Origin: Cyanophora paradoxa CCMP329
Taxonomy: Eukaryota > Plantae > Glaucophyta
Length of the DNA stretch: 58,689 nt
NCBI GenBank assembly: GCA_004431415.1
Contig: QPMI01000540.1
Location: 1 to 58,689, forward strand
Reading direction: 5' to 3'
Positions 3,405 to 48,144 of the stretch are shown here, in pieces. The notes beneath the pieces are model-generated. The model ran no database searches and was not told the DNA's origin. It saw only the letters and a program-made list of their open reading frames with translations. Both the position numbers and the translations under genes were made by a program. Numbering within the stretch: position 1 is the stretch's first letter; every line of letters begins with the position of its first letter.

Positions 3405-4055
3405 TCAAACCGAAACGATCAACGCACAGCACGGGAAAAAACCCACGGGTTCGAATGCGCCCGTCTCCGTCTTTTTGGAAAGCTCACACGTCCGCTCGCC
3501 TAGCCCTAGTTTTCTGCCGGCGCTGGCGCTAGAGGCCGCAGCCGCAGTCGCCGCGCATCCGCGAGCTCGCACCCGCGCGCGTGGCGACGAGCTCCCGGCC
3601 GCGGCTCGACGAGCTCTCCGCGGGCTCTCCGGCTCGTTAGCGCCTCTGTCGATCGTAGAGAGCCGACTAAGCCGCGTCCGAGGGACGGGCTCTCGCCCCT
3701 GCGTCGCCGCCGTCGGGGTTGACGTGGGACGGCGATCTGCGTGCCGCCGCCGGCGCTCCACTCGACGGCGAGCTTCTTCATGGCCTCCGATGCGCTTTGC
3801 AGAGGATCCGGTGCGCCCCTTGACCGCCATGTTCGTAACCTGGGCCAGGCTGCGGTTGGGAAACGGCGCAGCGACGGCGAGGAGCCGCCAGGGCCCGCGG
3901 CTCTTGGTGAACGAGCCGCGGATGGTGCCGCGCGAGTGCTCCTTGAACCGCCGCGCGAGGCTCGCCGTCTCGCCGCAGTAGAACATCCGGCCGTTGTGCA
4001 GCAGGTACACGACGTGCTGCTTCTCAAACTGGTGGTGGAACGGCCGGGCCTTGCC
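3405..4055 (-). CDS. GIY-YIG endonuclease domain (SLX1/UPF0213-like); may be the C-terminus of the upstream YR polyprotein
   Basis: HVVYLLHNGRMFYCGETASLARRFKEHSRG..GSFTKSRGPWRL matches VYxL..YxGxTxxlxRRxxxH..T..rPW. Confidence 0.8.
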   Translation of the reverse strand, partial: GKARPFHHQFEKQHVVYLLHNGRMFYCGETASLARRFKEHSRGTIRGSFTKSRGPWRLLAVAAPFPNRSLAQVTNMAVKGRTGSSAKRIGGHEEARRRVERRRRHADRRPTSTPTAATQGREPVPRTRLSRLSTIDRGANEPESPRRARRAAAGSSSPRARVRARGCAATAAAASSASAGRKLGLGERTCELSKKTETGAFEPVGFFPCCALIVSV

Positions 4056-4364: not shown

Positions 4365-7300
4365 TTATGCGTTCAGCAGATGCCCTGCGGTACAGGAGCT
4401 GCGGCGACGGCGGGGGAGGCGGCGGCGGCGGGGCGGGGCTGGGCTTGAACCGCTTCGGCGCCCCCCGCTCGAGGGCTCGACGCGGCGACGGGCGCGGAGG
4501 ATGCCGTCGGGCGGGGCGCGCCGTGGGCGGCGCCGGTGCGCAGAGGAGGCCGGAGGGCAGGGATGCGGGGGGCGCGGCGTGTCGGGTCGTGCGCGCCCGT
4601 CCATCCCTCGCCGCTCCCCTGCCACGAGCCGTCGCCGACCCCGCTCCCATTTGCAGGATCGGAGCGCAGAGGGCCGGGGGCGCCGCCCTCAGCCAGGGGG
4701 CCGCGCCTTGGGCGGCCTCCCGCGCCGCCTCGCGGCGGGGCGCCCCGCCCGCCGCCGCCGCCCCCGCCGCGCGACGACGAGGAGGAAGAGGCCGGCGGCG
4801 GCGAGGACGCCGGCCGCGCAAAGCCCAGGAGCTCCAGCACCCGCTCGGCGCCGGTTCGGATCTCGACGGTGCCGTTGCGGCCCTCGTACTCGACTGGGAA
4901 GAGGGCGCTCACGCCCGTCCACTCGCGAGGTCCGCCCTCCTGGCTCGCCGTCCACGCCCCGCCGAACCGCTTCAGCAGGACCAAGCGGGACTCGAACTCG
5001 CCGCTCGGCAGGTCGATCGTCTGGACGAGGCGCGCGTACACCACGTTGGGCAGCGGGCTCGCCGCGTGCGTCGCCAGCGCCGCCACCACCTGCCCCGCCG
5101 CGTACGGCGAGGCCGACCGCCAGCGCAGGTGGTAGAGGGGCGGCGGCGGCCCCGCGCGGGCGCGGCGACGGGGGCGGGAACGGCGCCGCCGCGGCCCGGC
5201 CCGGGGCCCCGCCGGCGGCTGAGGCCACGCCGGTGGCCGCCGCGGATGAGCCCTCGGGAACAGTAGCTCGCGTGGTGCTTGGCCCCGGCCGCGTTCTTGA
5301 ACGCCTCGCGGTGCGTCGGGGGCGGTAAAGGCGGGAGGGCGCGGGGCGCGGGGCGGGCGCGGTCTCACCCGGTCGCAGGGCTCGCAGTAGCGCTGCTCGG
5401 CGATCGCCAGCGCCCGCTCGACGGCATAGTCGGCGTCCCAGGGCCGTCGAGGGCCCCCCGCGCTGCCGGTCCGGCGCCGCTTGGCCTCTTCCGCGCCGGC
5501 CGAGCCGCCCCCGTCCCCCTCGTCCTCTTCCTCTTCCTCCTCCTCCTCTTCCTCTTCCTCTTCGCCCAAGTCGAACGAGCTGGAGCTCCCGCCCTTGCCC
5601 GCCGGCTCCGGGCTCGTCGGCGGCGTCTGCGTCTGCGTCGCCGGCGCCGGCGCCGCCTCGCCCCCGTCCTCTTCCTCTTCCTCTTCCTCGCGCCCCTCGT
5701 TCTCCTCCCTCGCCGCCTTGTCGCCGCGGCGCCCGCCGCCCGTCCCCCGCCCCTTGTTCCGCCCACCTCCTCGGCGCGCCGCGCGGGGCGCCGCCGGGCG
5801 GGGCGCGGGGTCGGCCGTCGGCCCCTCCAGGAGCGGCGGATCGAGCCCGTCGGGGCTCTCCCGCGCGCGGCGCCTCTCCTCCCCGTGCTTCAGCGCCAGC
5901 TGCTCGAGGTACGCCACCGCCGAGGCCGCCGCGCGCGCGCGGGCCGAGTAGTCGTAATTCTGCGTCGCAGTGATGACGCTGTGCCCCAGCAGCTTGGCTG
6001 CGCGGGGAGTCGCGGTGACGGCGGGCGCAGCGGCGGGGCGCGGGAGCGGGGTACGGCGCACCCGTCCCCTCGACGACGGCGGCGGCGGTGTCGCCGGAGA
6101 TGCGGTTCGCGGCGGCCTCGTCCCGCACGTGCGTCGTGATGATGGCGCGGATGGCCTGCGCCGTCACCGGCACGCCCGTGTACTTTTCCGTCACCTGCGG
6201 TGCGTGAGTTTCTCCCCCTTCAGCCCGCCCGCCCCGCGCGCCTTTTTCACAAAGTTGCTCCAGCCGGCGTCGGAGAGGAGCGTTCCCGTCGGGCCGGTGA
6301 AGAGCCATCCCTCGTCGGCGGCGCCCGTCGTCGGCGGGAAGAGGAGGCGGCGGTAGCGCTCGACGTACAAGGTGAGCGGCTCCTGGACAAAACCGGGGAT
6401 CGGAAAGGTCATCGCGCCCGCAGTCTTGGCCGTCTTGGACGAGAGGACCGGCTCGGCGCCCCCGACGTCGATTCTCATCTTTGTGAGCGCGATCGCCCAC
6501 GCGCCCTGGTCCCGTCGGAGCGTGTGACCGATCCTGCGCAGGGCGCGCGGTGGCCATGGGGGCGGGGCGGGAGGGGCGGCGGAGTGGGGGTACGGCACCT
6601 GAGGCGGCGGACGATGCCGACGCGCGAGGGCGTCGAGACGAGGAGGGAGAGGAGGAGCCCCTCGCGGAGGGCGAGGGCCTTGTCGTACTCGAGCGGCGCA
6701 CGCTCCGCCGCCTCGAGCGCGTCCAGCCGCGCCGAGAGGAGCGTCTCGAACGGCACCCAGTTCGGTCCGCGCTCGCGCCACTTGACCCCCTCGCGCTTCT
6801 CCTTTCTCAGCTGGGCGAGCAGGTTGCGGAGGCCGCGGGCGTGGGGCCCCTCGGAGCCCGACGCCGCGCCCGACGTGCGCGCGTGGACAAAGGCGTGGGC
6901 CTGGAGCGCCGCCTGCGTGTACCCCGCCAAGGTGGCCGCCTGCACCTTGCGCTCCCCGCGGAGAAACGTGAGGAATCGCATCCACAGGTCGATGAAGTCG
7001 ACGCGGGCGCCGGAGAAGAGGTCGAGCGTCGGGGCGCCGTCGATCTTCTCGCGGAGGGCGCAGTACCCCAGGAAGCGCAGCAGCGTCGTCCGCTCGTTGG
7101 CCAGCGTCGAGGAGCGCTCGACGGCGGCGCCGGGGCGGTCGGGGTTGAGGGCCCGGGTACGCCACTCTTCGTACGCGGCGAGCTGCGCCTTGAGCTCCCG
7201 CGACTGATCCTCCTCGCGCAGGCCGTACGGGGCGGCGCGCTCGGCCGACGGCTCCTCGGCGGCCTCGGCGTCGGAGCCCGCGTCGCCCGGCGCCGGCAGC

Positions 7301-7444
7301 GGCGGCGGCGGCGGCGAGCTCGAGGGAGAGGACGACGGGCCGGCGCCGGGATCGCTCCCCTCGCTGCCGGAGCTCGTCGAGCTCTCCCCGAGGTCGACGG
7401 CTCGAATCCCCGCGGCGGCGCCCGGCGGAGCCTGGCGGGACGCT

Positions 7445-7478
<34 letters not shown>

Positions 7479-9175
7479 GGGGCCGCTCCTCGGCGGGGAG
7501 GACCACGCGCTCGGGGTCCGGCAGGGCGTCGGCGTCAAAGAGCGTGATCGACGGGTCGAGGATCATGCTCTCCAGCATCGACCGGTACGCCTGGCGCTTC
7601 TCCGCGATAAACTTGGCGTTGTCCTTGGCGACGGCGTCTGACATGGGGCCCCCGGGGCGGTAGAACATCAGCTCGCCGTGCGCCAGCTCGTCCGACCACG
7701 AGAAGCCCGTCGCCACCTCCAGCGTCGCGCCCTCGGCGAACCAGAGGATCCCTGCCGAGGGCCCTTAAAGGGGCGCGGCGGGGTGGGCGCCGAGGGAGAG
7801 GCGCGCACACGGCCCGCACTGGTACCCGTCCACCTGGAGCCGCCCGCCGCTCGTCTCGTCCACGTACTGGTGCGCGGGAAACGCCGCCTTGGCCGCGTAG
7901 ACGAGCGACGGGTCGCAGGGCTCGCCGAGCGAGTCCCAGTACCGCGTCTTCGCCCCGCCGAGCACGAGGAGGGTCCAGTGGCCGCCGCTCGCCGAGCGCT
8001 TCTCGGCCCCGCGGCGCACGAGGCTCGTCGAGACGGGGCAGATGACGGTGCCGCCCCTCGCCACGAGCGACAGTGCGCGCCGCTTACGGCGCTCCTCGCT
8101 CGCAGCCGCGTACCGGCGGAGGACCGAGGCGAGGATGTCGACGCTCATCGGGTAGAGGGCCGCACGCGGCCGTTGTTGGCCTTGCGCAGGATGAGGGTGA
8201 GCACGTTGGCGATGTGCGTGTCCGTGAGCCACTCGCGCGCGCCAAAGATCGGGACGCGGCGCGCAGGCGGGACGGGCGCGGGAACGGCGGCGGCGGCGGC
8301 GACGGGGTCGGCGCCCTCGAGGACGAGCCGCTGGCGCTTGAAGTCGGCGAGGAGGCTCGCGTCGCGCCCGGTAGGTCCTTCAGGAACATCTCCACGCCGA
8401 GCGCGCTGATGAAGCCCCAGGTGCGGGCAAAGCCGCGCGAGGCCTCGCCCTCGACCTCGGAGCCAAGGCCGGCGTACCGCGTCAGCGTCTGCGTGACGAG
8501 GCCGAAGCGCTCGCGGCCGATGCTCAGCGTCGTCACGTTCCAGCGGTGCGGCCCGTCCCGCGCGAGGTCGGGGAGGCGCTTCTCGATCTCTCGCCGCACG
8601 CAGTTTGTGTCGCGGGAGGAGCCGTAGAGGGCGTCGGCGAGCGAGGCCATCGGCACCCAGAGCTGCAGGTCCGGAACCTCGATCCGCTTGGCGCGCAGCG
8701 CGTACATGCGCTTGCCGCCGACGCGTATGACGTGCAGGTCGAGGCGCGCGAGGGTGCGGGGCCGGCGGCGCTCGTTGGCGGCGTAGAACGAGGCGGCGGC
8801 GGCGCGCTTGCGCTGCTCGTCCGTGACCTCCCAGGCCTCGGCGACCACGTCCAGCACGTAGCGCATCGCCACCATCCGCGGCGGCGACTCGGGCGTGCAC
8901 TCGCGCCGGCGGACGGCGCCCAGGGCCTCGAGCAGCAGGATGGCGTTCTCGTCGGGCAGCGGCCGCGTCGGCACTCCGTAGCGCGCGGTGAGGAGGTCCT
9001 CGGCCTCGGCCTCGGGCCCGTCGGGGTCGAGGCGCGGCTCGCCGAGGACGCGCGCCAGCTGGGCCGAGCACGCGGCGGGGCCCGCCGTCGTCGGGAGGAC
9101 GACGAGGCGCTCCGGCCCCCAGGGCCCCGCGTACTCGACGAGCTCGTAGGCGTCGTGCACCGTCGGAAAGGACAT
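4365..9175 (-). CDS. Multi-exon polyprotein: possible BRO-N-like region, Ulp1/C48 protease, tyrosine recombinase, acidic tract, CxxC..HxxxC Zn finger, unknown domain (3' end uncertain)
   Basis: Ulp1: WLTDTHI, HWTLLV, YWDSL, QVDGYQCG|PWILWFAE. Intron 7752-7808 joins it in frame to the YR ORF. YR: PSRVG (R), SSKTAK (K), QAIR (HxxR with H>Q), LLGHS, QNYD (Y), assembled via introns 6534-6598, 6195-6241 (GC-AG) and 5998-6061. Zn finger YCEPCDR|AFKNAAGAKHHASYC. Two single-base frameshifts near 8370 and 8160. Confidence 0.8.
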
Positions 9176-9708
9176 TGCGGCGGCGCAACCGATCGCGGGC
9201 GGCCGCGTGGGACGGGCCGCGGGGCAGCGGTGTGGGCCCCGCCAACTCTAGCCCCAAGGAGCAATGGGGCGCTTGGATTTATGTATCTGCCCTGCGCGAT
9301 TGCGAGCTCGAAGTAGATAGGGGTACAGTTTTCGGTGCTCTCTGCAGTAAGGGTACAGGCACCGCCCTCTCGCCCTCCCCCCCCCCCCCCCCCTTCTTTT
9401 TTGGGGGGACGGTCGCAGTCGGTTCATCCCTGCACGCCACGATGAAACAGTGTCACAGTGCTCGAGATTTCGTACCTGTTTTGATTTCAAATTCCCATCT
9501 TGGTTTTCAGGTTTCCCTTCAAAAAGCTTTGTGAAGCTTATAATTAAGCGATCGCAGCTCTAAATGTCTATCTCGAGTCAAATACAGAAATAGAGCCCCA
9601 CCGTGCTGCCATCTGTATCGTCAGGGAGATCTAGAGCTCGAGGCTATAGCTATAGCTAGTGGTCTGACGAGATCTATAGAGCGAACATCAACATTGATAT
9701 CGATATCG

Positions 9709-10728: not shown

Positions 10729-11697
10729 TCACTCGTCCGTCCCGCGGATCTTTTTGCGGAGCTGCATGTCCTTGGGCTGGATTGTGATGCTGCGCGCCCC
10801 CGGCGGTTATGTGCCCCTGTACGGGGCGCTACAGAGTTTTGGAGGGGGGTGGAATATTAATGGGCGGCATATATACCGCTTGGCATGGATCGCGAGGAGG
10901 TTGCTCCCCTCGAACGTCTCGATGGCGTAACTGCGTCTCGACGATCAGTTGCAGAGGCGGCGTTCTATGAACTTGCAAATTTCGCGAACTGCTCAGTGGC
11001 CTCGCGGAGAGCGAGGACGGCCTGCCGGCACCAGCGAAGAGCGGTGGTGTCGGTCAGCCTCGCCTCGCGAAGCTCCTTCAGGACATCCTCGGTGATCTCC
11101 TTGACGGTGCGGGTGAATGGGGCGAGCGCAATGATGGGTTCGGTTCGCTTCTGCCACTTGCGAATCTCCCTGCGAGCGGTGGATTCACTGAGCCTCTGAT
11201 AGTGTTTATTGCACTTGAGACAACATCAACGTACCGGAGGGCAACCGTGCCTCCGCAAAGGCGTGCGCGGTTATAAACAAATTTAAATCAGATAGAGAAA
11301 CATTATGAATGATAGTCACTTCAAAAGGCTTTAAGATAGTAAGATCTAGAAAAAACGTTAATTTAGAAAAAACGTTAATTAAAATATAAGATCTAGAAAT
11401 GATAGTTGAATTCCGACTCGGCGAAGTTCGAAATCACTGACTAGAGTCACTTTAGTCACTTTAAAGTTAACCCTGCTATAGCGCTAGCTAGGCCTAGGTT
11501 CGCATACTGATCATGAATAAATATAAAAGTGAACTCGGACCTGGACGGTAACGGTGTGGCTTCTTGACGCCTCCTGCTGCAGGAGCCGCTCGACGGGCCG
11601 CCTTTGATGCGAGCTTCCGCTCGCCCATGTTTGCGAATCGCTTCCGCGGGGCCTTGCCCCCCGTGCTCTTTTGCCCCGTGTGCTTTGTCCGTGCCAT
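10729..11697 (-). CDS. Divergent histone H3 variant, 5 exons, intact
   Basis: Exons 11697-11541, 11250-11235, 11169-10990, 10930-10877 and 10789-10729 splice in phase (all GT-AG) to [155 protein letters not shown]. Confidence 0.93.
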
Positions 11698-11836
11698 CTG
11701 GCTATAGCTTGATCGGGCCGAAAGGCCCTGCGGCCTTGCCGGAGTGCGCACACGTGGGTGCTCTTATTTATATATTCGTATACACATGGAGTTTTTGCGT
11801 CGTGCATTTCAGATTCAGAGTCAAGAACTTCGGAAA

Positions 11837-13874
11837 TCAAGGGGCGTCGGACTCGGATTTCGAGCCGTCGGCGTCCGAGGCCCCGGGCCCGGCCGCCTTG
11901 ATGCGAAAGACGTTCTTCGGCATGCGAACGAGCGGCTCGCCCTTGCTGTCGACGAGCTTCTTCACGCGCTCATCGAGCCGCTTCTCGATCTCCTCGAGCG
12001 CCGCGTCGTCGGCGCGCTGCAGGTTGGGGAGAAAGGCGACAAAGTCCGCCGGGCTGACGCCGTCGCCCACCACGCGCGCGAGGCCCGGGAGGCGCTGCAG
12101 GACGCGGGCGCAGGCGGCCAGGTCCGAGTAGGCCTTGGCGCACACCGAGCGCTCCTCCAGGCGGAGGCCGCAGGCCTCGAGGATGTGGTTGTAGCGCGGC
12201 TCGACGCGGTCCCGCCGAAAGTAGCCCCAGCTGCGGGGGTTCCGCCCGTTGGCCTCGACGTAGCGCTCGTACGCCCCGAGGATGCCCGTCGAGGCGAGGA
12301 GGAGGCAGCGGATCCGCTCCCGCCCCGCGTGCTGGGCCCGCAGGAGGAGGGCCCGCCGCGCCGCGGGGTCCCCGTCGAGCTGGATCCCGACGAGGGCGGC
12401 GTCGACGCCGCGCCGCAGCCCCCGCTCGAGCTCACGGAGGGAGAGAGTCCCCTCGCTCCTCTCCGAGACCGCCTCTTCCCCCTCGCCGCCCTCGCCGCCA
12501 CCGCTGCCGCCGCCGCCGCCGCCGCCGCCCTCGTGCTCCGCGTCCGCATCCGAGCCCGAGTCCGACGTCCCCTCGCCGTCCCGATCGCGATCGGCCGCCT
12601 CGAGCTGGGTCTCGAACTCGGCCCGCTTCTGCTCCTCCCACTCGTTCATCGGCCCGTCTTCGCCGGCGGGCTCGCCTCCGCCTCCACCGCCGCCGCCCGC
12701 GCCGGGGGCCTCGGTCTCCTCGCCCTCGCCCTCGCCCTCGCCCGCGCCCTCCTCGTCGTCCTCCTCGTCAAAGTCCTCGCGCTTGCACGTGTAGGCGTCG
12801 TAGAGGATGCGCTGCAGCTTCTCGCTTTCCCACGGCGGCCGCCGCTCCGACGAGGCGGGGCGGCGCTGCCGCTTGGCCGGCGGGCCCTTGGGCGCCTCGA
12901 TGGCCAGCGGCGGCTCCTCGTCCTCGAGCTCGTCCTTGTCCTGGGCGGCGGCGGGGGCCATGCGCCTCGCGCGCGTCGCCCGGGCCGCGGCTGCCGGCGC
13001 CGGCGCCGGAGCTCCCTTGGCCGCCGACGCCGAGCTCCCCTCGGCCGCCGTCGAGGCCTGCGAGGCCCGGCGCGCCCCGAGCGGCGGGGCGTCGACGCGT
13101 TCGAGTCGGTCCCGCCCTTGTGCGCGGCCGCGGGCTGGGCGGCCGCGGGGGAGCCCGCGGCAGTAGGCTCCTGGGAGGCAGACTCGGCCGCTGGCGCCGC
13201 CTGTCCCCTGGACGAAGAGGGCCCCGCCCCGCCGCTCGTCGGGGGCGCGCGGCGGCACGAGGCAAGCGCGGCGAGCTGGATCGCGCGCGAGACGCCCTCG
13301 GCAGCCGTCCAGGACTCGGGGCGCTCGGCCTCGTGGACAAAGGCGCGGTAGGCGAGGTAGCCGTCGACGCGCGACGAGGGGACGAGGGTGGAGAGGGTCG
13401 GGTGCGGCTCGCTGCACGCATTCTGGAGCATGGGGCACTCGACCTCGCCCTCTTCGTCTCCGGCCGCGCCCGTGGGCGCCAGAACCTGCGCAGAAGGGGA
13501 CGTCGAGGGGGGCGGGGGGTACGGTGGGGGTATGGGCGCGGGGCTGGCACCTTGGGAACGCAGGCGAGGCACACGAGGCCGTGGCGCTGGAGCAGGTGGC
13601 CCGTCGGCTCGTCGTTGAGGTCGATCGCGCGGTCGAGGTCGCCCCCGCCGGCGAGCTCGGCGATGCTCCTGGCCAGGCATGCCGGCACGTACGCCGGCGG
13701 GAGGAGCCGCTCCGCAGCGCAGACGCTGCACCGGGGGCGCACGTCGAGCTCCAGCCAGGCCGAGATGTACTTGGGGCGGGCGATCCGCACGGGCCGCGCG
13801 TCGATCGGCGGGGCCCCCGACGCTGCCTCCTCCTGGGAGGACGCCGCCTGCTTGCCCTTGGCCTTGGCCCCCAT
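11837..13874 (-). CDS. RING-like Zn finger + acidic linker + unknown helical domain (paralog 1)
   Basis: CSVC..PAC..HGLVCLAC|..CPMLQNAC; intron ~13487-13550; D/E-rich linker; C-terminal YSDLAACARVLQRLPGLARVVG..EKRLDE. At least one frameshift. Confidence 0.6.
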
Positions 13875-14174
13875 CGAGACCGCGGGACCCGTGTTCCCGG
13901 TACCCTCCCCGCTCGAGTCGAGGGGGTACGCAGGCCCTTTCAATCCTGCACGCGGGAATGAGACGGACGGCGTGCGACGTGCAGCCATTTATGAATTCGG
14001 GAGATGCACGCCCCTCTCGCTTTTCCTTGGTGCGCATGCGCACCTGCGAACCGCGCGGCAGCGTCCAACAGGCCCGCGTGCGCTCGGCCTCTAGATCTGT
14101 GCCCGTTAAGGCCGGTGCGCCTCGCGACTCGTTCTAGCGGCGGCAGGCTTGTACCCCCGTTCACTTCACATGGA

Positions 14175-14970
14175 CCCGAAATCGGCCGGGCTCTGGTCGG
14201 GGAGGGGGGGGGAAGGGGGGGAGGGGGGAAGCGCGGCTAGGTGCGGGTCTTGCAAGGCGTACCCGGCCCTCTCGACTTGCCGGATTTCGAGAGCGGTTTC
14301 CGAAGTGGCTCCGTACCCCTGACCATACGGTACATAGACCTGGAATCGGCCGAGCTCTGGTCGGGGGAGCTCGAGTAGGGGGGGTAGAGGGTGAGGCCGC
14401 AAGGGTACCAGACGGACAAGGTCGCAAAAGACGCCGTTCCCCACACCCTCGGCAGAGCGACCAGAGCTCGGCCGATTTCAGGCCTAGAAAGAGGGGGCAG
14501 AACGATCTGTACCCCTCTTTCGCCGCCGACCAGAGCTCGGCCGATTTCAGGCCTAGAAAGGGGGGCAGAACGATCTGTACCCTTCTTTCGCCGCCGACCA
14601 GAGCTCGGCCGATCCCAGGTCTAGAAGAGGGGGACAGAACGATCTCGGCCTTTATCTTGAGGCTGTACCCCCCGATCGCGTGGTGCATCTAGACCGGGGA
14701 TTGGCCGAGCTCTGGTCAGTGCACGTGGTGGGGGGGGAATTCAAAGGGGTTATATATAGAGGGGAAGGGTTGAAGGAAACCGGTATACCCCCCTCCCCTC
14801 CCCTCCCCTCCCCTCCCCCCCCAAGGCCCGCAGACTGCAGAAGATCCAACCAGAGCTCGGCCGATTTCGCGACCAAATATAAAGGGGGCAAGGTTAAGAG
14901 AGCGCGTCAAAGACCACTACCCCTCAGAATCACCACAACTAGACCTGGAATCGGCCGAGCTCTGGTCAGC
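14175..14970. repeat. Cluster of ~8 copies of the core motif, including a ~68-bp tandem repeat at ~14457-14640
   Basis: GACCAGAGCTCGGCCGAT or its reverse complement near 14180, 14345, 14460, 14530, 14598, 14700, 14850 and 14950. Confidence 0.85.
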
Positions 14971-15219
14971 GGGGGGAGAGGGGATCCAAGGAAGATAACA
15001 CAGGACCACATACCGGGTTCGACTCTCGAGCGGATCCCTCCCGAGGGCGGCGCGAGCGACACGAGCAGCCTTCGTGAACTCGGCCCGCGCTCGTCTGGTA
15101 TCAGCGGGTGCTGCGGGACTCGTCGGCTGCGTACGTGGAGAGAGGGCGATCTGCGTAGCGATAGAAAGAGCATGAGCGACGCGCCGCAGCTGGGGTGCCG
15201 GCCGCCGCCGACCTGGGTA

Positions 15220-16415
15220 GAGAAAGAGGGGTACGCACCTCTGCCGCCGCCGCTCATAGAGCCGCGATCGGCCGAGCTCTGTGCAGGGGGAGGAAGAGGA
15301 GGGGGGGGGGAGCGGGCGGGGGTACGGATCAGGAAGCGTCCGGCACCGCGCAGCCCTGGCGGCAGCAGCCCCTGCGCAGAGCTCGGCCGATTAGGGGGCG
15401 AGGTAGACAGAGAGGGGTACGCACCTCTGCCGCCGCCGCTCATAGAGCCGCGATCGGCCGAGCTCTGTGCAGGGGGAGGAAGAGGAGGGGGGGGGAGCGG
15501 GCGGGGTACGGATCAGGAAGCGTCCGGCACCGCGCAGCCCTGGCGGCAGCAGTCCCTGCGCAGAGCTCGGCCGATTAGGGGCGAGGTAGACAGAGAGGGG
15601 TACGCACCTCTGCCGCCGCCGCTCATAGAGCCGCTTTCGGCCGAGCTCTGTGCAGGGGAAGGAAGAGGGGGAGGGGGGGAGCGGGCGGGGTACGGACCAA
15701 GGTGAGCGTCCGGTATCGCACCCTACCCTCGGCGGCAGCGGCCCCCTGTGCGCAGAGCTCGGCCGATTACGGGACGAGAGAGAGGGTGAGAAATAGACAG
15801 AGGGGTACGCACCGCTGCCGCCGCCGATCATAGAGCCGCTTTCGGCCGGGCTCTGTGCAGGGGAAGGAAGAGGGGGAGGGGCGGAGCGGGCGGGGGTACG
15901 GATCAGGAAGCGTCCGGCACCGCGCAGCCCTTGGCGGCAGCAGTCCCTGCGCAGAGCTCGGCCGATTAGGGGACGAGGTAGACAGAGAGGGGTACGCACC
16001 TCTGCCGCCGCCGCTCATAGAGCCGCGATCGGCCGAGCTCTGTGCAGGGGGAGAAGAGGGGGGAAGGGGCGGAGCGGGCGGGGGGTACTGATCAGGAAGC
16101 GTCCGGCACCGCGCAGCCCTTGGCGGCAGCAGCCCCTGCGCAGAGCTCGGCCGATCACGGGACGAGGTAGACAGAGAGGGGTACGCACCTCTGCCGCCGC
16201 CGCTCATAGAGCCGCGATCGGCCGAGCTCTGTGCAGGGGGAGGAAGAGGGGGGAGCGGGAGCGGGCGGGGGTACGGATCAGAAAGCGTCCGGCACCGCGC
16301 AGCCCTTGGCGGCAGCAGTCCCTGCACAGAGGTCAGAGATCTAGAGAGGGTAGCACCGCGAGAGAAATCAAACGGCAAATACCCCCCACCCCTGACCAGA
16401 GCTCGGCCGATTCCG
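15220..16415. repeat. Second tandem array of family A, ~6 units of ~185-200 bp
   Basis: Same unit as 259-1840 (GAGGGGTACGCACC..CTCATAGAGCCGCGATCGGCCGAGCTCTGTGCAGGGG..GGATCAGGAAGCGTCCGG), same orientation. Confidence 0.95.
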
Positions 16416-19994: not shown

Positions 19995-20725
19995 CTCGCA
20001 CAGAGCTCGGCCGATAGAGGGTCTATCGCGCGGGTGTGGCAGGGGGTATAGCTTTTCAGTCCCTCGTGTGCGCCTCGCTCCATTATCGGCCGAGCTCTGT
20101 GCAGGGGCGCTGCCGTGGGAGCTGTACCCGGCGCTATTTCTGATTTCGTACCCCGTCCGCTCTCACCCCTCACCTTCCTCCATCCCGCGCAGAGCTCGGC
20201 CGGAAGCGGGTCTATCGTTGGCGGCGGTAGAGGGTGCGTACCCCCTTCTGACTGCCTCGGCCGCCCCGCTCGACCGTTGTACGATTATCGGCCGAGCTCT
20301 GTGCAGGGGCGCCGCCGTGGGAGCTGCACGGTACCCGGCGCTATTTCTGATTTCGTACCCCGTCCGCTCTCACCCCTCACCTTCCTCCACCCCGCGCAGA
20401 GCTCGGCCGGAAGCGGGTCTATCTATCGTTGGCGGCGGTAGAGAGTACATACCCCCTCTGACGGGCCGTTCTCCCGTATCCCCAAAAACCGGCTAGCCGC
20501 TTGCCGCCCGCCAGCCGCCACTAGCCGCTAGCGCGCGCCAGCCGCACCGCTCGCCCCCCGTTGTACAATTATCGGTCGAGCTCTGCGCAGGGGCGCCGCC
20601 GTGGAGAGCTGCACATGCACGGAATCGGGTACCATTCTGATTCGTATCCCACGTCTGCTCTCCACCTTTCCCCTACCCCCTATTCGCCCCTGCACAGAGC
20701 TCGGCCGAAAAGCGGTCTATCTATT
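19995..20725. repeat. Repeat family B, ~3 units of ~200 bp built on the same inverted core
   Basis: ATTATCGGCCGAGCTCTGTGCAGGGGCGC..CTATTTCTGATTTCGTACCCC..CAGAGCTCGGCCG at ~20082 and 20285, with a more diverged copy at ~20569. Confidence 0.85.
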
Positions 20726-27297: not shown

Positions 27298-27668
27298 TGT
27301 GCCGCCCACTTTCCGACTCCCAGCTAGCCCTGGTCGTCGGCTCTAAGCCGGCAGCTTGCCTTGCCTTGTACCCTTTGTAGCCTGCTATTCCTGGTGCCAC
27401 GTTGTTGCCAACTGGCCCGCTTATTTTAGCTCTGGGCCCTCGCTTGCCCTGCGCGGCGCTCGCTTGCTGGCTGTCGTTCTTGTCCCTGTTCTCTGTACTT
27501 ACTGTCTTACGCTGTACCTGTTACTTGCTGTCTTACGCCGGCTCTGCGCCTGCTGTGTACGTAATGGCACCCGCTTGCCGTCGCCCTACGGTGCTGTACG
27601 GGCCTGTCCCTCTCTGCTTGGGGCGCCTCTGGGCCTAGCCAACTGCTTAGCGCATCCCGCCCAGCGCA
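27298..27668 (+). repeat. 5' LTR
   Basis: TGTGCCGCCC...CCCAGCGCA; apparently identical to 29876-30246 (overlapping ORF translations match). Confidence 0.92.
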
Positions 27669-29875: not shown

Positions 29876-30246
29876 TGTGCCGCCCACTTTCCGACTCCCA
29901 GCTAGCCCTGGTCGTCGGCTCTAAGCCGGCAGCTTGCCTTGCCTTGTACCCTTTGTAGCCTGCTATTCCTGGTGCCACGTTGTTGCCAACTGGCCCGCTT
30001 ATTTTAGCTCTGGGCCCTCGCTTGCCCTGCGCGGCGCTCGCTTGCTGGCTGTCGTTCTTGTCCCTGTTCTCTGTACTTACTGTCTTACGCTGTACCTGTT
30101 ACTTGCTGTCTTACGCCGGCTCTGCGCCTGCTGTGTACGTAATGGCACCCGCTTGCCGTCGCCCTACGGTGCTGTACGGGCCTGTCCCTCTCTGCTTGGG
30201 GCGCCTCTGGGCCTAGCCAACTGCTTAGCGCATCCCGCCCAGCGCA
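29876..30246 (+). repeat. 3' LTR
   Basis: Direct repeat of 27298-27668. Confidence 0.92.
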
Positions 30247-37539: not shown

Positions 37540-38430
37540 CCGCCCGCGGAGGAGGTCTAGGGGGGTAGAGCGGCGGGCAAGGCGTCTCGGTCCCGCCCTT
37601 TGTTCGTCTTGCCCCCTCACCCCCCTCTTTCACCCCCCCCGCACCCTCTCGTTGGCTACCGTACCCCATTTTCACACTCTCCCCCCGCACAGAGCTCGGC
37701 CATTTCCCGCTTCTATGTGGAGAAGGGGGGTACCGCGACCTCAAGGGCACGGCGAGAGGTAGGTGAGCGAGTCGATCCGGAAGCAGTACCTCCGTGCACG
37801 GCGTCGGCCGGTACGCGCCCCCGTCCCGCTCCCCGCATTGCCCGGTAATCGGACGAGCTCTGTGCAGGGGGGAGGAGGTCCAGGGGGGTAGAGCGGCGGG
37901 CAAGGCGTCTCGGTCCGCCCTTTTGTTCGTCTTGCCCCCATCTCCCCCCCTCTTTCACCGTACCCCCTTTTCACACTCCCCCCGTCCCGCTCCCCGCATT
38001 GCCCGGTAATCGGACGAGCTCTGTGCAGGGGGGAGGAGGTCCAGGGGGGTAGAGCGGCGGGCAAGGCGTCTCGGTCCCGCCCCTTTGTTCGTCTTGCCCC
38101 CCTCTCCCCCCCTCTTTCACCCCCCCGCACCCTCTCGTCGGCTACCGTACCCCCTTTTCACACCCTCCCCGTCCCGCTCCCCGCATTGCCCGGTAATCGG
38201 ACGAGCTCTGTGCAGGGGGGAGGAGGTCTAGGGGGGTAGAGCGGCGGGCAAGGCGTCTCGGTCCCGCCCCTTTGTTCGTCTTGCCCCCCTCTCCCCTCCT
38301 CTTCCACCCCCCTCCCCCCCCCGCACCTTTTCGTCGGCTACCGTACCCCCCTTTTCACACTCCCCCCCCCGCGCAGAGCTCGGCCATTTCCCGCTTCTAT
38401 GTGGAGAAAGGGGGCTACCGCAACCTCAAG
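37540..38430. repeat. Repeat family C, ~160-190 bp units with a variant core (ATCGGACGAGCTCTGTGCAGGGG)
   Basis: CCCCGTCCCGCTCCCCGCATTGCCCGGTAATCGGACGAGCTCTG at ~37819, 37979 and 38167; CAGAGCTCGGCCAT at ~37690 and 38376. Confidence 0.9.
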
Positions 38431-39900: not shown

Positions 39901-42186
39901 ATGAAACGCCCGGCGGACCACGATGCGTCCGAGGGTCCCACCGGCGACCGAACCGGAGTAGCACCGCCGGCGGTGCCACCGTGCAACGCAGCGGCACAAG
40001 TCACGATCAAGCGCGAGGGGGCGGCACCGCAGGCGGTGCCGCCGTGCGCCGCCGCGGCGCAGGCCAAGCGCGAGGGGCGGCACCGCCGGCGGTGCCGCTG
40101 CCGCCCAAGGAGGGCGCCGGCGCCGATGCAGAGGGCGACCTCGAGATGGAGGACAAGGCGCCGGCGGGCGCGACCGCGCCGCCCTCGGGCGCGCCCCTCC
40201 CCGCCCCCGCCGCGAACCAGATCGTGCGGACCACGGTCCTCGTCAAGAGCAACCCGCGCAAGGGCGCCGCGCGCGACGCGATCTTTGCCGTCCCTGGCAG
40301 CCCGCCGACGTGGAGAGGCTCGAGTCGCCGGTCGCGCGCCGCGCCGTCGTCCAGATCTCGCCCCAGATCCTCGTCGAGCACGCGGGCGGCGCCCGGCGCA
40401 CCCTCCGCGCGTTCAACGTCTTTGACTTTGACGTCCCCAACATCCGCTTCCCCGAGGCGCTGGAGGGCGGCTCGCTCGGGAGGGAGCAGCTGAAGAACGC
40501 CAAGAAAGAGTACCTCGCCGGCGTGCTGGCGCGGTGCGAGACCCTCGCCCAGTACTGGACCGAGGTCCCCGAGATCCTCGGCGTCGCCCGCCGCGCGCGC
40601 GACTTTGCCCGGGCCCTCCAGGCGCGCGGCGTCGCCGTCCTCGTCGTCTTCTCGGGCCTTAAGGGCTTCCACGTCTACGTGCGCGACGCCGACCTCGTCG
40701 CGGCGGTCGAGGGGCCCGGCGCCGCCGTGTACGCCAAGGAGGACCTCGACCAGTGGTGGGGCATTGTGCGCGCCAAGCTCAAGCGGCTCGAGGAGGACTC
40801 GGCGGCGGCGCTGCGCGACCCGTCGGTCCCGCAGGGGGAGAAGAGCCGCCTCCGCCGCTCCTTCTGGTCCAAGGCCACGCGCGCCGCTGGCCCGCGGCGC
40901 GTCCCCGGCATGTACAAGGCGGGACGGTGGGAGGGGCGCGAGGCCTTTGAGCGCGTCGTCGTCCCGTTTGCGGAGGAGCGCGGGATCGGGGCGATGGTGG
41001 AGCAGCTGGAAAGGGAGGGCGTCCTGGACCTCGCGCCGTTCCGCGTCAACAGCGGCTGCCGCTCCGACGAGCACCGCCACGGCTGGACCTCCTACTACCC
41101 GTGGCGGTACCCCTGGAGGCCGTCGACGACGCGGCGATCGCGGCGACGGTCCGCCTGCACGCCACGCGGCCCGACCCGCTCCTCGTCGCGTGGAACAGCG
41201 ACGAGTGGCGCTGGCTGCGCGAGCTCGCGCGCGAGATCGCCCCCAAGCACACCCTCCACGTGGCGGCCCCGCGGACGGCGCCCGCCCTCCGCCGCCCAAG
41301 CGCCCGCGCGCCCCCCGGGCCCCGGCCGCCGCCGACGCTCGATCGGGAGGGCGAGAAGGAGGAGGAGGAGGAGGAGGGCGGGAATGCGGAGGACGGGGAC
41401 GCCGAGGACGAGGCGACGATCAGCGAGGGCGTGGTGGAGCGCCTCGGGCTCCTCGCGTGCGGGGCGGGGCGCGGGCGGGGCTGGAGCGCCGCCCCGGCCG
41501 CGGCCGCGGCGGCCGTGGCGGCCCTCGATCTCCCACTTTGTTTCGCCGCCCGACGCGGACGGGGGCGAGCTCTGCCCCACGGCCGGGACCACGAGCGCGT
41601 GGAGACGAGCATGTGGGTGGCGGAGAGCGGCATCCGCGGCGTCCTCGCCGCGACGGCGCACTGCTACTCGCTCCGCTGCGCCGGCGAGCCGCTCCTGGGC
41701 GCCCTCGCGTGGGCCCAGCCGGGCGCCTTTGGCGGCGCCTCGACCCTCGCCCAGGCCGACGCGGCGCTCCTGGGGCTCCACGCCACCGTCGCCCGCATCG
41801 CCGACCGGAGCCTCCAGCTCGCGGAGAGGCTCGCGCGCGCGGCGGCGGCGGCGGCGGCGGCAGAGGCGCAGGCGGCAGCGGCGGCGGCAGAGGGGAGGGG
41901 GCAGGGGGACGGGCCCCAGGACGGCGCGCGCGGGGCGGCGCCGGCGCCGGCCGCCCCCGCCCTCCCGCAGCGGCCGGCGGGGGCGCTGCCCCCCGTCCGC
42001 GTCGCCTCGCACGTCGAGGGCCGCTCCTACTTTGTCCGCGTCCCCTGCTGGAGCTGCGGTCACCGCAAGGGGAAGCTCTTCATCGACCAGACGAGCGGGG
42101 AGGCCACACATATAAAAACAAATATTATTATCCCTCGCGTTCCGCTCAGGATAATAATATTTGTTTTTATATGTGTGTTATTATAA
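39901..42186 (+). CDS. Archaeo-eukaryotic primase (AEP/PrimPol-like) with Cys/His-containing C-terminus; about three frameshifts as assembled
   Basis: Motif I VFDFD, motif II VVFSGLKGFHVY, probable motif III VLDLAPF; C-terminal HCYSLRC..VPCWSCGH. Confidence 0.82.
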
Positions 42187-42432
42187 GTTATATAAAGATA
42201 TTAGCATTTTTATCATAGTGTATATCGATATATGATATGTATTCTATCGGTAGTTCGTAAATGAATCAATAAAAATAATATAAGTATCGTGGAATCTTTG
42301 TAAAATATGTATATATAATATGTAATCGCGATATAGCCGATATGTGTTTACGATGCGCGATGTGTATCTAAAACAACTACAATGTGCTGCTTGGGACGCG
42401 CCTCATATAGTCATGTGTATCACCTACGTAGC

Positions 42433-43450
42433 TTCGATAGGGTGGGGCGGGTGGGTGAGGTGGGGCATTTTTTGAATTCCCTAAAATGTTTCACTCCCAA
42501 AAATTCTTGGTCAAAAAGACCCCACCCAACCCCACTTACCCCACCCTGTATTATTCTCTTTATCTATGATTGATTTCAATGTAATTTAAATATAAATATG
42601 TATGATTGAGTATGTTAAATTAATACTGGGTGGGGTGTGAGGGTGGGGTGTGAGTGGTATCGGTATGGTAGTCCAATCTAAGATGGCACACATAAAATCA
42701 TGATGTGTTATTTTACTTCCGGTTTGATACTTATCGGACTTCGATAACTTCGATAGGGTGGGGCGGGTGGGGTGAGGTGGGGCATTTTTTTGAATTCCCT
42801 AAAATAATTCCCCTCAAAAATTCTTGGTCAAAAAAGACCCCACCCAACCCCACTTACCCCACCCTGTATCTTTTATTATATTTATGATTGATTTCAATGT
42901 GATTAATGTATAAAATATAGAGATTATGTATGTTAAATTAATACCGGGTGGGGTGTGAGGGTGGGGTGTGAAAGTGGTATCAGCCAACCATTTAATAATT
43001 ACGATATTGAACCGACGTGATACCGACGAGATATGATATATTCAGATCGTATTAGAACGGCGCGATCACTAAGAAAAACAAGTATCATGTGCTGTATATT
43101 TCGCGATCCCTGAATCGCGAATCGATAGGGTGGGGTGAGAAAGTGGGGCACCACCCTCACTGTATACACTGTGATATGATCGCAATCCCGATGTAGCCTA
43201 CTATGATATCGTGCGGACTTCGATAGGGTGGGGTAAGTGGGGTGAGGTGGGGCATTTTTTTGAATCCCTTAAATTTTTGGGGGGTCAAATATTTTTGGGC
43301 AAAAAAGACCCCACCCAACCCCACCCTCCCCACCCTGTATTACTTATCGATACACCTCACTTATTTCAATGTATAAACTCTAATTAAAATAGATAGTAAA
43401 TATGTATAGAAATAACGTGAATGTGGTATAGGGTGGGGTGTAGGGTGGGG
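42433..43450. repeat. AT-rich region with three ~110-bp hairpin units (~34-bp imperfect inverted arms of G4-type tracts) and partial copies
   Basis: AGGGTGGGG..GGTGGGGCATTTTTT ... AAAAAGACCCCACCCAACCCCAC..CCCCACCCT at ~42439-42548, 42755-42866 and 43225-43337. Confidence 0.85.
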
Positions 43451-44638
43451 GCAAAATGCAAACTGAATCAGTGCGATATAATTTAGTGAACACAAAGTGG
43501 ATATGAAGTGGATACGAAGTGGATACGAAGGGGATAAGTGCGCCCCGCCCACTATGCAAGATACATGCAAACTACATGCGAGTTCTATGAAAACAATAAC
43601 GATTTAGTCATGTATATATTTCGTATATATGTCCGCACCTCCGTGTGTGTGATCCCGCACAACTTTGCTTTTTTGTGTTTTTTTTGTTTTTTTTCGCATA
43701 TCACGACTGTTGCCACTGTAGTTTAGCTTGCATTCAGGCCTTCGAGCCACTCTGTAGTATAGTGCTAGTGCGCGGGCTGAGGCTGTAGCACTTCTCAATA
43801 GCTCATAGACTTGCCGGTACCTCCGCAGTACCTAGGACTCCTCCGGCGTTGCCGGTTCGTAGACAGATTCTGTACCCCCCCCACGTTGTTCGATACCCCC
43901 TCAGTCCTGTAAGAAGCCCAGCTGCGACCCGTTCGTGCTACGCCTGCGCGCCTGCTGCCTAGGCATGGGGCTGGGATCACATTGGGACACTAACTAAGCC
44001 TATTTGACCCTCGCCGGGACGATCGCTGGCCTGACGGCGGTTCGACAACGACCCGCCGCCACCTGGCGTGAACCCGCGGGAGGAGAGTGCGTCATCCTCG
44101 ACGGACGTGCTAGACTACACGACCGCGTGCCCGCTGGACGCGCCGACCGGCCGGAGCACGACCTAACTGACGGAGCTGACTTCCTTGTCCTTCGCCAAAC
44201 TTGTCGCGCGGCGTGCCTTGCTCTACGCAGGACACGTGCGGGAACGAACACTCGCTGCAGGCAGTGACCCGTGTCTTGCGGCTCGCTGCCCAGTGCAGGA
44301 GAGAGTGAGGCGAAATCACTCGACCTTTACGTGTAGCGACCCGTGACTTGCGGCTCGTTACGCCTAAAGGGCAACGTGTATCGGTGCGCGATCTGCACTG
44401 CACGTTGCTGTCGCTGTCGTGTCGTACTCTCGTCGCGATCGTCGTGCTCGTGCACGCGCGCTGAGAGCTCCGCAGCTGTTGACAACACTGTCAGCAGCTC
44501 GGCCAACGACACGCAGTGACTGCTCGACTGCCCTCGCCCTCGTAGTCGGCCACACGGCGGCCGCGATCGCGACGCAGTACGTTACGGACACACCGGCATA
44601 CGCCGCGTACGTGACACGCAGGACGTAAACGAGCAACC

Positions 44639-45295
44639 TGTACGGATCGCACCCGCTCACGTAGCGGCTGAAATCTGTACGTCGATCTTCAGAGCACCCC
44701 GCTCAGAAGGTCACCGTCAACCCCGTCGTCAACTTGTACGGATCGCACCCGCTCACGTAGCGGCTGAAATCTGTACGTCGATCTTCAGAGCACCCCGCTC
44801 AGAAGATCACCGTCAACCCCGTCGTCAACTTGTACGGATCGCACCCGCTCACGTAGCGGCTGAAATCTGTACGTCGATCTTCAGAGCACCCCGCTCAGAA
44901 GATCACCGTCAACCCCTCGTCAACTTGTACGGATCGCACCCGCTCACGTAGCGGCTGAGATCTGTGCGTCGTCGATCTTCAGAGCACCTCAGCTCAGAAG
45001 ATCATCAACCCCGTCATCTATTTTTACAGATCACACCCGCTCACGTAGCGGCTGAGATCTGTGCGTCGTCGATCTTCAGAGCACCTCAGCTCAGAAGATC
45101 ATCCACCCCGTCATCTATTTTTACAGATCACACCCGCTCACGTAGCGGCTGAGATCTGTGCGTCGTCGATCTTCAGAGCACCCCGCTCAGAAGATCATCC
45201 TCGACTTCGTCGCCGGTCTACGGAGCACCTCAGCTCTCAGGACCATCACCACCGTACATCTTACTTCAGATCACACCCGCTCACGCAGCGGCTGC
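44639..45295 (+). repeat. ~96-bp tandem repeat (~7 units) in the retroelement leader
   Basis: TGTACGGATCGCACCCGCTCACGTAGCGGCTGAAATCTG..ATCTTCAGAGCACCCCGCTCAGAAG at 44639, 44735, 44831 and 44926, then diverging copies. Confidence 0.92.
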
Positions 45296-45346
45296 GCTCC
45301 GTTCACCGACGGTCTTCGAAATCACTCAGAGACCATCAACGTCAAC

Positions 45347-48144
45347 ATGAACCGCGACGAGCATGGCGGCTCCCGCATCCGGAACCCGGTGCCGACGCAC
45401 GCGTACGGCGACTCGGCTGAGATTGCGGCGACCAACCGTGCGGAGTCCTCGCAGCTACGCGGCGGAGTCGACGCAGAGCCCCGACGCGCGTGAAGATTGC
45501 GGAGGGCTCATCGCCACCAGCCCCGGCCAGCCCTCAAACCTGAGGGCGTCATTACTCATATCAACGACGGCCGCGCCATTGCTGCATCGGACCCCAAGAA
45601 GTACTCGACCGAGAACGACGGCTCTCAGAAGAGCCTCGCCCTCCTCCTTGTTCTACTGCAAGCCCTGTCGGCAGGCCTCAGGTCCATCGTATCGACCCTT
45701 GTGCAAGGCACCGCTGTCAAGGTCAACGCCAAGGAGGCGGCCGACGAGAGATGCCAGGAGCTCGGCAAGCGCATCTTGGCCATGAGCAAGACGGAGAGGC
45801 AGAGCTTCAACGGGCAGCGGTTACTGGAACGCCTTAAGAAGGCCAACGCCGAACTTGAGAGCGCTGAAGCCGCGCTCGATCAACCCGGCACGATCAAGGG
45901 CCTCCCCTCATACATGCGATTCCTCATCAGCAAGATTAGCCCCGAGGAGAGTGAGGCCTTGGACACGCGCCTCAAGTCACCTTACGACGGCAGTCCTTTA
46001 CCCGACGCGCTGAAGGCCGTACACGACTTACTCCCATCCTCGACCCTCCTCCCAGACGGACAGAAGATGAAGCCCATCGACATTGTGAAGACGCTGGAGA
46101 GCCAGATCAACCGACGCGCTGGGCACAGTGGGGGATCTTACACCAACATGAACACCCAGGAGGGTCACAACCGTACCGTAACTTCCTGAACGCCCGCGAC
46201 AAGATACCTGAATTGAAGCGGATCGCCCTCGAACACGAACCCGAGGACGACGCTTCAGCAGACTTCAGGGAAATGAAGCTTGCTTCTTTCATGACCGACG
46301 CCTTCGCCGCTATACCACCTGGCCTCTTCGTCGAGGTCCGCTCGGCATCGACTGGGGAGGCTAAGTCTTCCAAGAAGATCTCTCGAGTCGAGCGGGAACA
46401 GCGCCGGAACAACGACGGGAGCAACGTGCACGACGGCAATCGCAGAGCTCAGACGACTCTGACGGCTCTGACTCCAGCTCGGGACATTCGAAGCGTAGGA
46501 AGAGTTCAAGCCGGGCACCCCTCGGGGCGTCCGCGGTTTACACTCATCCAAGCTCCGGACAACCGAACCCGAACTCGGCATACACGGCAGCTATACCTGC
46601 ACCGGCCAACGACAAGAAGCAGACGGGGAAACCCAATTACAATTACCCGCGCGTTGAGAAGATTACTGCAATTAAACAACGGGAAGGTTACCACCGAGCA
46701 GAGAAGCCTAAACACCGCGGTACCAACCACGACTTCTACTGCTGGCGGTGCCCTGACAATTTACCGCCGGCCGAACGCCACCATTACGCTGACGATTACC
46801 TGGAATGCCCACGGCATGACTACCGGTATAAGCTACTGGAGATGATCCAGAGCGGCGACAACAACCCAATTGTACGAATGGCGGCAGAAACCTGCAAGAT
46901 TCCCACTGGCTCAAACGGACAGACGGCGCCGACGCAGCCCACGCAAAATGCAGCGGCTAACCCGACGTCGAACCTCCAATGCTTTAACTGTCAAGGTTAC
47001 GGACATCGCCAATCGGAATGCACTCAACCCAAGAAGTGCCGACTTTGTAACTCAACTGAACACCTCCAAGCAAACTGCCCCGGAACGGCAACCGTGACGG
47101 CGGTGGCGGCGCAGGAGGCGGTAATAAGGACACCTACCCCTGGGGTCGCGGTGACCGTGGTGGCCGCGGTGGACGAGGTGGCGGACGAGGCGGCGGACGA
47201 GGCGGCGGTCGCGGCGGTGGTGGAGGACCTTCATCGCGCCCCCCCTCGGCATCACTGCCAATGACAATCCTACAACGACGACGGACGCACCAAAGACCCC
47301 GGCCACGACGCCGGCGCCTACGTGCCCGTCTGACACCACTACGCCCCTCACAACAGGTGTACCACAGACCCCGGCCACGACGCCGGCGCCCGTGGGCCCA
47401 CCTGGAACTACGGCTTCATTACACACGCCGACAGTGCCAACCACTGCAACGCAGGCCCCGGCCACGATGCCGGCGCCGACGAACCCAGTGGAGACACCAG
47501 TCTTGCAAACTGTGCCGGTACACGTCGCACAGCCAGTTCCAATGGGAGAAGTGCCAGCCCCGACCACGACGTCGGCGCCAGCACCTACCTCCACGCCTAC
47601 GGAACAGCAAATCGCAGAACTGGTGCAAGAAGCTAGAACGCGGGCTACTAAACCACACTTCCAGCCCAGACCTGTTAACGTAACACAAGCTCTATACGAC
47701 TTGCAGCGAGAAGAAGTACGAGTGTCGGCAGTGACATCGACCGTCCTCGACAAGGTCAACAGAGCACTGGCTAAAATGGCCAACCTTGGAGCGCGAGCTG
47801 CCACCCCAACCCGCCCCAAGAGCAACAAGTATACAACCAAATTTGGCTTCATTCGGGAACGTATCTCTGCAATTACACAAGCCGCGGCAATCCCAGTACG
47901 GCGGATCGAAGTCGACAAGAACGCGACAAAGACCTGCTGGAACACGGACACGTGCGCTGAACACCTCCAAGGGCCTCTGGTAAAGACGCTGCAGGACGTT
48001 ACGGCGCGGGCCGCCAACCTCGGTCTCGAGATCGCGGCAACGAAGGCGGCACTTACCAGCAAAGGGGGCAAGACCACAAACGTCTCGACGGCAAAGGCTC
48101 ATGACGGCCAGCCACCGTTGCCTCGACGGCGCAGAAGCCGGTAG
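45347..48144 (+). CDS. Gag-like polyprotein region with two CCHC zinc knuckles and RGG tract (frameshifted)
   Basis: CFNCQGYGHRQSEC and CRLCNSTEHLQANC at ~46980-47080, followed in another frame by RGGRGGGRGGGRGG, then a Pro/Thr-rich segment. Confidence 0.7.

Follow-up and report, generated by a model that had tools for sequence, protein, structure and literature searches.

In other organisms, the region spanning helix 1, loop 1 and helix 2 targets the histone H3 variant CenH3 (CENP-A/Cse4/CENH3) to its own chaperone. CenH3 proteins are recognized by an extended loop 1 and by the loss of conserved Q, F and T residues in the histone fold (PMC4359364, in which the third diagnostic position is printed as 118). 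An N-terminal tail that diverges strongly is another standard criterion (PMC4359364). Duplication of the CenH3 gene has precedents (PMC5435080, PMC4476163, PMC8603533). In Drosophila (Cid1-5), Fabeae, cereals, cowpea and Caenorhabditis, CenH3 paralogs have arisen by repeated duplication and rapid divergence within one lineage; these proteins have been shown to be centromeric, and their tails are divergent. Families of CenH3 paralogs are known, but not with H3-like tails. No report of a Cyanophora CenH3 was found in our literature search. Here we analyzed a stretch of 58,689 nucleotides from Cyanophora paradoxa CCMP329 (contig QPMI01000540.1), which is referred to as the window. It contains an intact five-exon gene for an unusual H3 variant, in which an H3-like tail is joined to a fold with the features used to recognize CenH3.

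The H3-variant gene occupies positions 10729-11697 on the minus strand, with its ATG at 11697 and its TGA at 10731-10729. Together, the exons comprise 468 nt (155 codons and the stop codon), and all four introns are bounded by GT and AG. Exon 1 (11541-11697; 157 nt, 52 codons and one base) encodes the H3-like N-terminal tail with its insertion and the K27R/S28A substitutions. Intron 1 (11251-11540) separates it from exon 2 (11235-11250), a 16-nt micro-exon that completes a Gly codon, encodes TVAL and begins an Arg codon. In the alignment, TVAL is also found between RYRPG and REIRK in canonical H3 and in two C. paradoxa paralogs (P0017 and P0024). The chance expectation of such a micro-exon in the 371-nt gap, computed from local base frequencies, is 1.2e-7. 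Exon 3 (10990-11169; 180 nt) encodes helix N, helix 1 with a Q>T change, the extended loop 1, an RW pair and most of helix 2. Exon 4 (10877-10930; 54 nt) encodes the end of helix 2 and loop 2 with a T>S change, and exon 5 (10729-10789; 61 nt including the stop codon) encodes helix 3 and an acidic C-terminal end. The exon 3/4 and exon 4/5 junctions agree with those of a public gene model, P0001, whose sequence shows 100% identity across exons 3-5, and the helix 2 register of the paralogs is preserved across both junctions. Exons 1 and 2 are absent from the public gene models of this copy.

The C. paradoxa genome has a GC content of 67.6% and a mean intron length of 86 bp, and is probably haploid (PMC6704402). 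The base composition of the window and the shortness of its introns agree with these values. Intron 1, with 290 nt, 35% GC and a perfect 17-nt tandem duplication, is long and AT-rich by comparison, and a self-comparison found nothing similar to it elsewhere in the window. The locus as a whole is a lower-GC island (0.53-0.58 versus ~0.75 in its neighbors); depletion of CpG, measured as observed over expected, was not seen there. No histone 3' stem-loop was found in the Rfam search, which is expected if the gene encodes a replacement variant. A search for tRNA genes also found none. A palindromic 9-mer, AGCTATAGC, is located on the minus strand at 11701-11709, 4 nt upstream of the ATG (4 matches versus 0.13 expected). 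The only other AGCTATAGC site in the window is at 9643-9657, 1.07 kb past the H3 stop codon; AGATGGCA occurs within 40 nt after each AGCTATAGC site, and the two sites flank the low-GC island containing the gene.

Alignment of the exon 1-encoded tail to canonical H3 in many PDB entries covers residues 1-44 (E 3e-12), and 36 of these 44 positions are identical. This is the alignable N-terminal tail of the H3 family and not the highly divergent tail of CenH3. The residues R2, T3, K4, K9, S10, K14, K18, K23, K36 and K37 are retained. K27 is replaced by R and S28 by A, and one 8-residue insertion is located after PRK. The two residues preceding K9 are changed as well, giving GQKS instead of the canonical ARKS, so that both ARKS motifs are altered; the change before K9 was not mentioned in the initial annotation of this locus. 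The tail is 75% identical to that of P0024. In comparisons with the paralogs, conservation is higher in the tail (63-75%) than in the fold (47-50%).

Exon 3 alone matches the Pfam histone family (PF00125; E 1.4e-6, 29 bits versus a cut-off of 26.4). The exons were searched individually. Alignment to canonical-type sequences identified a Q>T change in PF-x-R, an F>W change in LR-x and a T>S change in ED-x-NL; T>S is conservative, and the T in the VTI motif is retained. A spacer of 19 residues separates helix 1 from the RW/RF pair, versus 8 in 71 canonical-type matches, making loop 1 longer by 11 residues. Identity to the 71 canonical-type folds averages 52-54% and reaches at most 57%, which differs from the near-identity to H3.1/H3.3 that marks the canonical and replacement histones. 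In a PDB sequence search with exon 3, the top matches were yeast Cse4 chains, slightly ahead of H3. The initial annotation had described an intact five-exon gene with a 16-nt micro-exon, a tail that keeps K4, K9, K14, K18 and K36 but carries K27R/S28A and an 8-residue insertion, and a fold with Q68>T, F84>W, T107>S and a loop 1 about 11 residues longer. The gene structure is borne out by the open frame, the GT-AG splice sites and the low chance expectation of the micro-exon, the tail by the exon 1 alignment, and the fold by the alignment and the spacer count. Its statement that these fold changes are the usual CenH3 diagnostics agrees with the published criteria (PMC4359364).

An AlphaFold model was built with a 49-sequence alignment for the gene model P0002, which differs from the window copy at 2 residues. 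The model (pLDDT 83.7) predicts a normal H3 fold, in which a 21-residue helix 1 is followed by a 12-residue loop. The loop 1 extension is modelled partly as two additional turns of helix 1. In a Foldseek search with this model, the best matches were nucleosomal H3 chains, many of which were among the top 50 with a probability of 1.0 and a TM-score of about 0.71. The search did not separate H3 from CENP-A. An H3-type three-dimensional fold is thus predicted for the variant.

The product matches the EukProt C. paradoxa model tig00000849_g4783; g4783 is absent from the supplements of two papers. Its 90% cluster contains two forms that are two residues apart and have two EukProt accessions each, giving four near-identical gene entries in a probably haploid genome (PMC6704402). 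To identify more distant relatives, 1.84 billion cluster representatives were searched exhaustively with phmmer, and the best 150 matches were considered. Among the matches listed, the nearest single-domain proteins are four from C. paradoxa that are encoded on four other contigs (P0017, P0019, P0024 and P0034). The long loop 1 and the RW pair are common to all four, and the H3-like tail is complete in P0017 and P0024. The tail insertion and K27R/S28A recur in P0024, and P0017 retains K27 and S28. Their folds are 48-55% identical to that of the window gene, compared with 52-54% for canonical H3. The next matches listed after the C. paradoxa models are fungal proteins named Cse4, cnp1 or CENP-A, followed by canonical H3. 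No close relative outside C. paradoxa was found among the best 150 matches. Word-based homolog searches recovered the gene's own models and one fragment, and nothing further, and scans of viral contigs and metagenomes recovered ordinary H3 loci only, with no more than 52% identity over the whole fold. Two H3-like genes on environmental viral contigs were also noted, neither of which is a close relative. One is on a giant-virus MAG contig (L001, 281-529; 44% identical); its match covers a stretch with fewer residues than the query range, as would fit a shorter loop 1. The match on the other contig (L002, 8001-8441; 31% identical) is not shortened in this way.

Whether the insertion columns are included or removed, five family members group together as a single clade in 200 of 200 NJ bootstraps. 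The tree is small, includes members with a full-length fold match but not P0034, and may be affected by long branches. The window gene is on the longest branch of the family. The family is placed as a long-branched clade apart from canonical H3, among long-loop RW sequences, a placement that comes from small sampling and has no measured support. As judged from these sequences, the H3 variant is one of at least five divergent members of a family that has so far been found only in C. paradoxa. The initial annotation had read the gene as encoded by a mobile element, had proposed a phylogeny as a check, and had named a conserved host variant as the outcome that would contradict this reading. The monophyly of the five Cyanophora variants comes near to that outcome, although the multi-copy state leaves room for an origin in an element. 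It had also named the case in which the gene is the host's sole CenH3, which does not apply in the presence of at least four divergent paralogs.

Combining these data, we tentatively favor, at a little under an even chance, that the H3 variants of this lineage-specific family are of the CenH3 type and that the gene is a member which has been duplicated and evolves fast. Its similarity to CenH3 lies in an H3-type fold that is about 50% identical to canonical H3, with the extended loop 1, the lost helix 1 Q and the F to W change. The Cse4 chains retrieved by exon 3 and the fungal Cse4/cnp1 proteins, which are the nearest named relatives outside the family among the matches listed, point in the same direction. 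The longest branch in the family and the presence of several genomic copies fit the rapid duplication and divergence of CenH3. The canonical and replacement histones (H3.1, H3.2 and H3.3) share with the variant the ten retained tail sites named above and, according to the model, the same overall fold. They differ from it in the fold sequence, the 11 additional residues in loop 1, K27R/S28A, the change in the first ARKS motif and the 8-residue insertion.

A CenH3-type variant of this kind would replace H3 in the nucleosome and pair with H4 like any H3. The extended helix 1/loop 1 and helix 2 could give it a separate deposition route, and the variant may then mark a special chromatin domain, most probably a centromeric one, as a CenH3 paralog. 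Its tail retains most of the H3 modification sites, with both ARKS contexts lost. We propose that, owing to this loss, readers of K9/K27-methyl silencing would bind the variant poorly.

Some features distinguish the variant from known CenH3 proteins. Its tail aligns with canonical H3 over 44 residues, whereas CenH3 tails are highly divergent. In sequence comparisons, the fold has diverged further than the tail; this reverses the standard CenH3 pattern and counts against the CenH3 assignment. In addition, loop 1 is predicted to consist partly of helix 1 turns, the C-terminal end is acidic, and there are at least five divergent paralogs in place of one gene. The CenH3 paralog families described above offer a parallel for repeated duplication and rapid divergence in one lineage. 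However, centromeric localization has been demonstrated for those proteins, and their tails are divergent, whereas the Cyanophora proteins are putative CenH3 paralogs with H3-like tails. The Cyanophora paralogs are also as distant from each other (48-69%) as from canonical H3, unlike the members of those families. To our knowledge, the precedents for CenH3 duplication have fewer than five divergent paralogs.

These differences bear on the main rival among the host-gene readings, which we consider somewhat unlikely: a lineage-specific H3 variant that is not centromeric, serving for example in repeat-rich or silent chromatin or at a cell-cycle or life stage, and resembling CenH3 through convergent changes in loop 1. 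The H3-like tail, which does not have the divergence expected of CenH3, and the many family members would suit such a variant, and lineage-specific H3 variants that bear modifications are common across eukaryotes (10.1101/2021.11.30.470311). However, an extended loop 1 together with the lost Q and the F>W change is the very combination by which CenH3 is recognized (PMC4359364), and it is CenH3 proteins that are the nearest named relatives outside the family among the matches listed.

The neighborhood of the gene raises the possibility of a mobile origin. The frames with strong codon periodicity from 13939 down to 3843 are all on the minus strand. The upstream neighbor (11840-13939) is an orphan frame that has strong GC at third codon positions and stops 140 nt short of the H3 ATG; it has no match in Pfam, PHROGs, NCBIfam, PDB or the viral contigs. 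The downstream neighbor (8087-9247, minus strand) is likewise an orphan frame for which the Pfam, PHROGs, NCBIfam, PDB and viral searches were blank. Further downstream (5850-7764, minus strand), motifs resembling those of tyrosine recombinases were recognized by eye. They are spread over three reading frames, which would involve introns or frameshifts. A faint match to a PHROG integrase (E 0.32) was obtained for this region, with no significant match in Pfam, NCBIfam, PDB or the homolog search, and a single-sequence structure model of the recombinase-like piece (pLDDT 48) was too poor for a structure search. A GIY-YIG nuclease domain (3843-4010, minus strand; Pfam PF01541, E 2.3e-5, 25 bits versus a cut-off of 22.6), 6.7 kb from the H3 gene, is the sole significant domain of mobile-element type. 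GIY-YIG domains occur in host genes too. Apart from this domain, the Pfam, PHROGs, NCBIfam and PDB searches of the neighboring frames gave only chance matches to glycine-rich linkers, and genes for a transposase, a reverse transcriptase or a capsid were not found.

The 13-kb block containing these frames has repeats on both sides. On one side is a tandem array with units of about 200 nt (259-1868). On the other side, the repeat family recurs as a cluster and tandem array (14181-16411) with units of 186-189 nt. The flanking arrays, 259-1868 and 15189-16331, are only 60-79% alike. A 15-mer, CAGAGCTCGGCCGAT, occurs 48 times (0.27 expected), with its orientation alternating every 90-110 nt, in tandem units of 186-202 nt that form four clusters (337-1827, 14181-16411, 20001-20709 and 37690-38388). 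The CAGAGCTCGGCCGAT repeat looks like a dispersed satellite or a MITE-like family. Since the signature 15-mer is present in four clusters of the window, the arrays represent a dispersed repeat and not the termini of the 13-kb block. No terminal inverted repeats, long terminal repeats or target-site duplication bracketing the block were found, and self-comparison found no second copy of the block within the window. Separately, copies of a ~190-nt repeat flank the first tandem array at 6-193 and 2368-2554 (identities of 95% and 87%), and a plus-strand frame over the 2368-2554 copy has a weak, sub-threshold match to the TFIIB repeat.

Other features of the window are located outside this block. 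Two 300-nt direct repeats (27298-27597 and 29876-30175) are 100% identical, 2578 nt apart and each beside a low-GC island; they resemble long terminal repeats, as if a small element had inserted recently. At 42051-43800, the GC content is 0.40-0.47, which makes this segment an AT-rich island given the 70% GC of the genome; it contains repeated 13-mers and direct repeats spaced by 318 nt. The segment from 44600 to 58689 is a compositionally distinct domain, in which the GC content is about 0.6 and the GC skew is steadily negative. This domain opens with a 96-nt tandem array (44634-45197) and contains an ORF (46365-47261) with a zinc-knuckle (zf-CCHC) match; nine other long frames in this domain gave no significant Pfam match.

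Starships are a known case of elements that are driven by a recombinase and carry cargo (PMC10104507). The locus resembles these fungal elements and Cryptons in having a possibly recombinase-like frame followed by unrelated genes on the same strand. It differs from them in that no element ends were found and the recombinase is only putative. The 13-kb same-strand block could be a transposon-like unit carrying its own H3 variant, which would mark or package the chromatin of the element and resist silencing. We regard this as unlikely. The lower-GC locus, lying among orphan, recombinase-like and nuclease frames, would fit a mobile origin and counts against the favored reading, and the four near-identical gene entries in a probably haploid genome, the shared strand of the frames from 13939 down to 3843, the significant GIY-YIG domain and the alteration of both ARKS motifs are also consistent with this idea. 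Orphan neighbors are found at a second locus of the family: P0019 corresponds to tig00000104_g4815, and both neighboring models, g4814 and g4816, are in Table S5 of PMC6704402, without a match in the older proteome and without an nr hit. Against a mobile unit, the block has no recognizable termini, the recombinase call has no significant support from the search tools, and the arrays on its two sides are diverged copies of a repeat that occurs in two further clusters of the window. Four spliceosomal introns, as in host genes, and relatives that form a host-wide family also argue for a gene of the host. The description of the gene as element-encoded in the initial annotation is therefore unproven: the searches revealed neither element boundaries nor a gene for a transposase, reverse transcriptase or capsid, and the flanking arrays belong to a dispersed repeat. 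A stronger version of this idea is distinctly unlikely. It would have a glaucophyte mobile unit, equipped with a recombinase or a nuclease, carry an H3 variant with a CenH3-type fold and thereby confer a private centromere-like or silencing-resistant identity on the chromatin of the element or on the adjacent ~190-200 bp arrays, the family then representing several element lineages. No report of a transposon-encoded histone was found in a literature phrase search.

It is very unlikely that the gene is a silent or decaying duplicate that has gone out of use. Methylation and silencing affect about 21% of the genes of C. paradoxa (PMC12344493), and the public models that omit exons 1 and 2, the oddly long and AT-rich intron 1 and the longest branch in the family could be taken as signs of decay. 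However, the frame is open over five exons, the splice sites are intact, including those of the micro-exon, the tail still matches canonical H3 at 36 of 44 positions, and the locus is not depleted of CpG.

The K27R/S28A substitutions led the initial annotation to suggest a Polycomb-proof histone, in which these changes would have evolved to escape PRC2-mediated H3K27 methylation of the gene's own locus. The substitutions are real, but this explanation is weak and, in our view, highly improbable. Two studies, which used an older draft genome, detected none of E(z), ESC and Suz12 in this alga, and an H3K27me3 blot was inconclusive (PMC5405695, PMC5725981). K27R/S28A is also present in a distant paralog on another contig, P0024, and P0017 keeps K27 and S28. 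Since the first ARKS motif is changed too, the substitutions point to a general divergence of the tail and not to a change specific to K27. We rejected K27R as a Polycomb-specific escape on these grounds. A giant-virus source of the histone, with the gene lying in an endogenous viral region of the type reported in C. paradoxa (PMC12344493), was likewise rejected as exceedingly improbable, because the best viral-contig matches (44% and 31% identical) are weaker than those to cellular H3, the viral-contig searches gave no relatives of the neighboring frames, the gene is interrupted by four spliceosomal introns, and its closest relatives among the matches listed are other C. paradoxa genes.

Our analysis has several implications. 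The truncated public gene models of this H3-variant copy need to be corrected. CenH3 is recognized partly by tails that cannot be aligned, and the Cyanophora family joins a CenH3-type core with a well-conserved H3 tail. If the variants are centromeric, the chemistry of the H3 tail (T3, K4, S10 and K36) would enter the centromeric nucleosome. The family would then represent an unusually large radiation of paralogs in an early-branching alga, which would bear on the origin of CenH3 from H3. Should the variants not be centromeric, they would show that the usual sequence-based criteria for CenH3 can be misleading.
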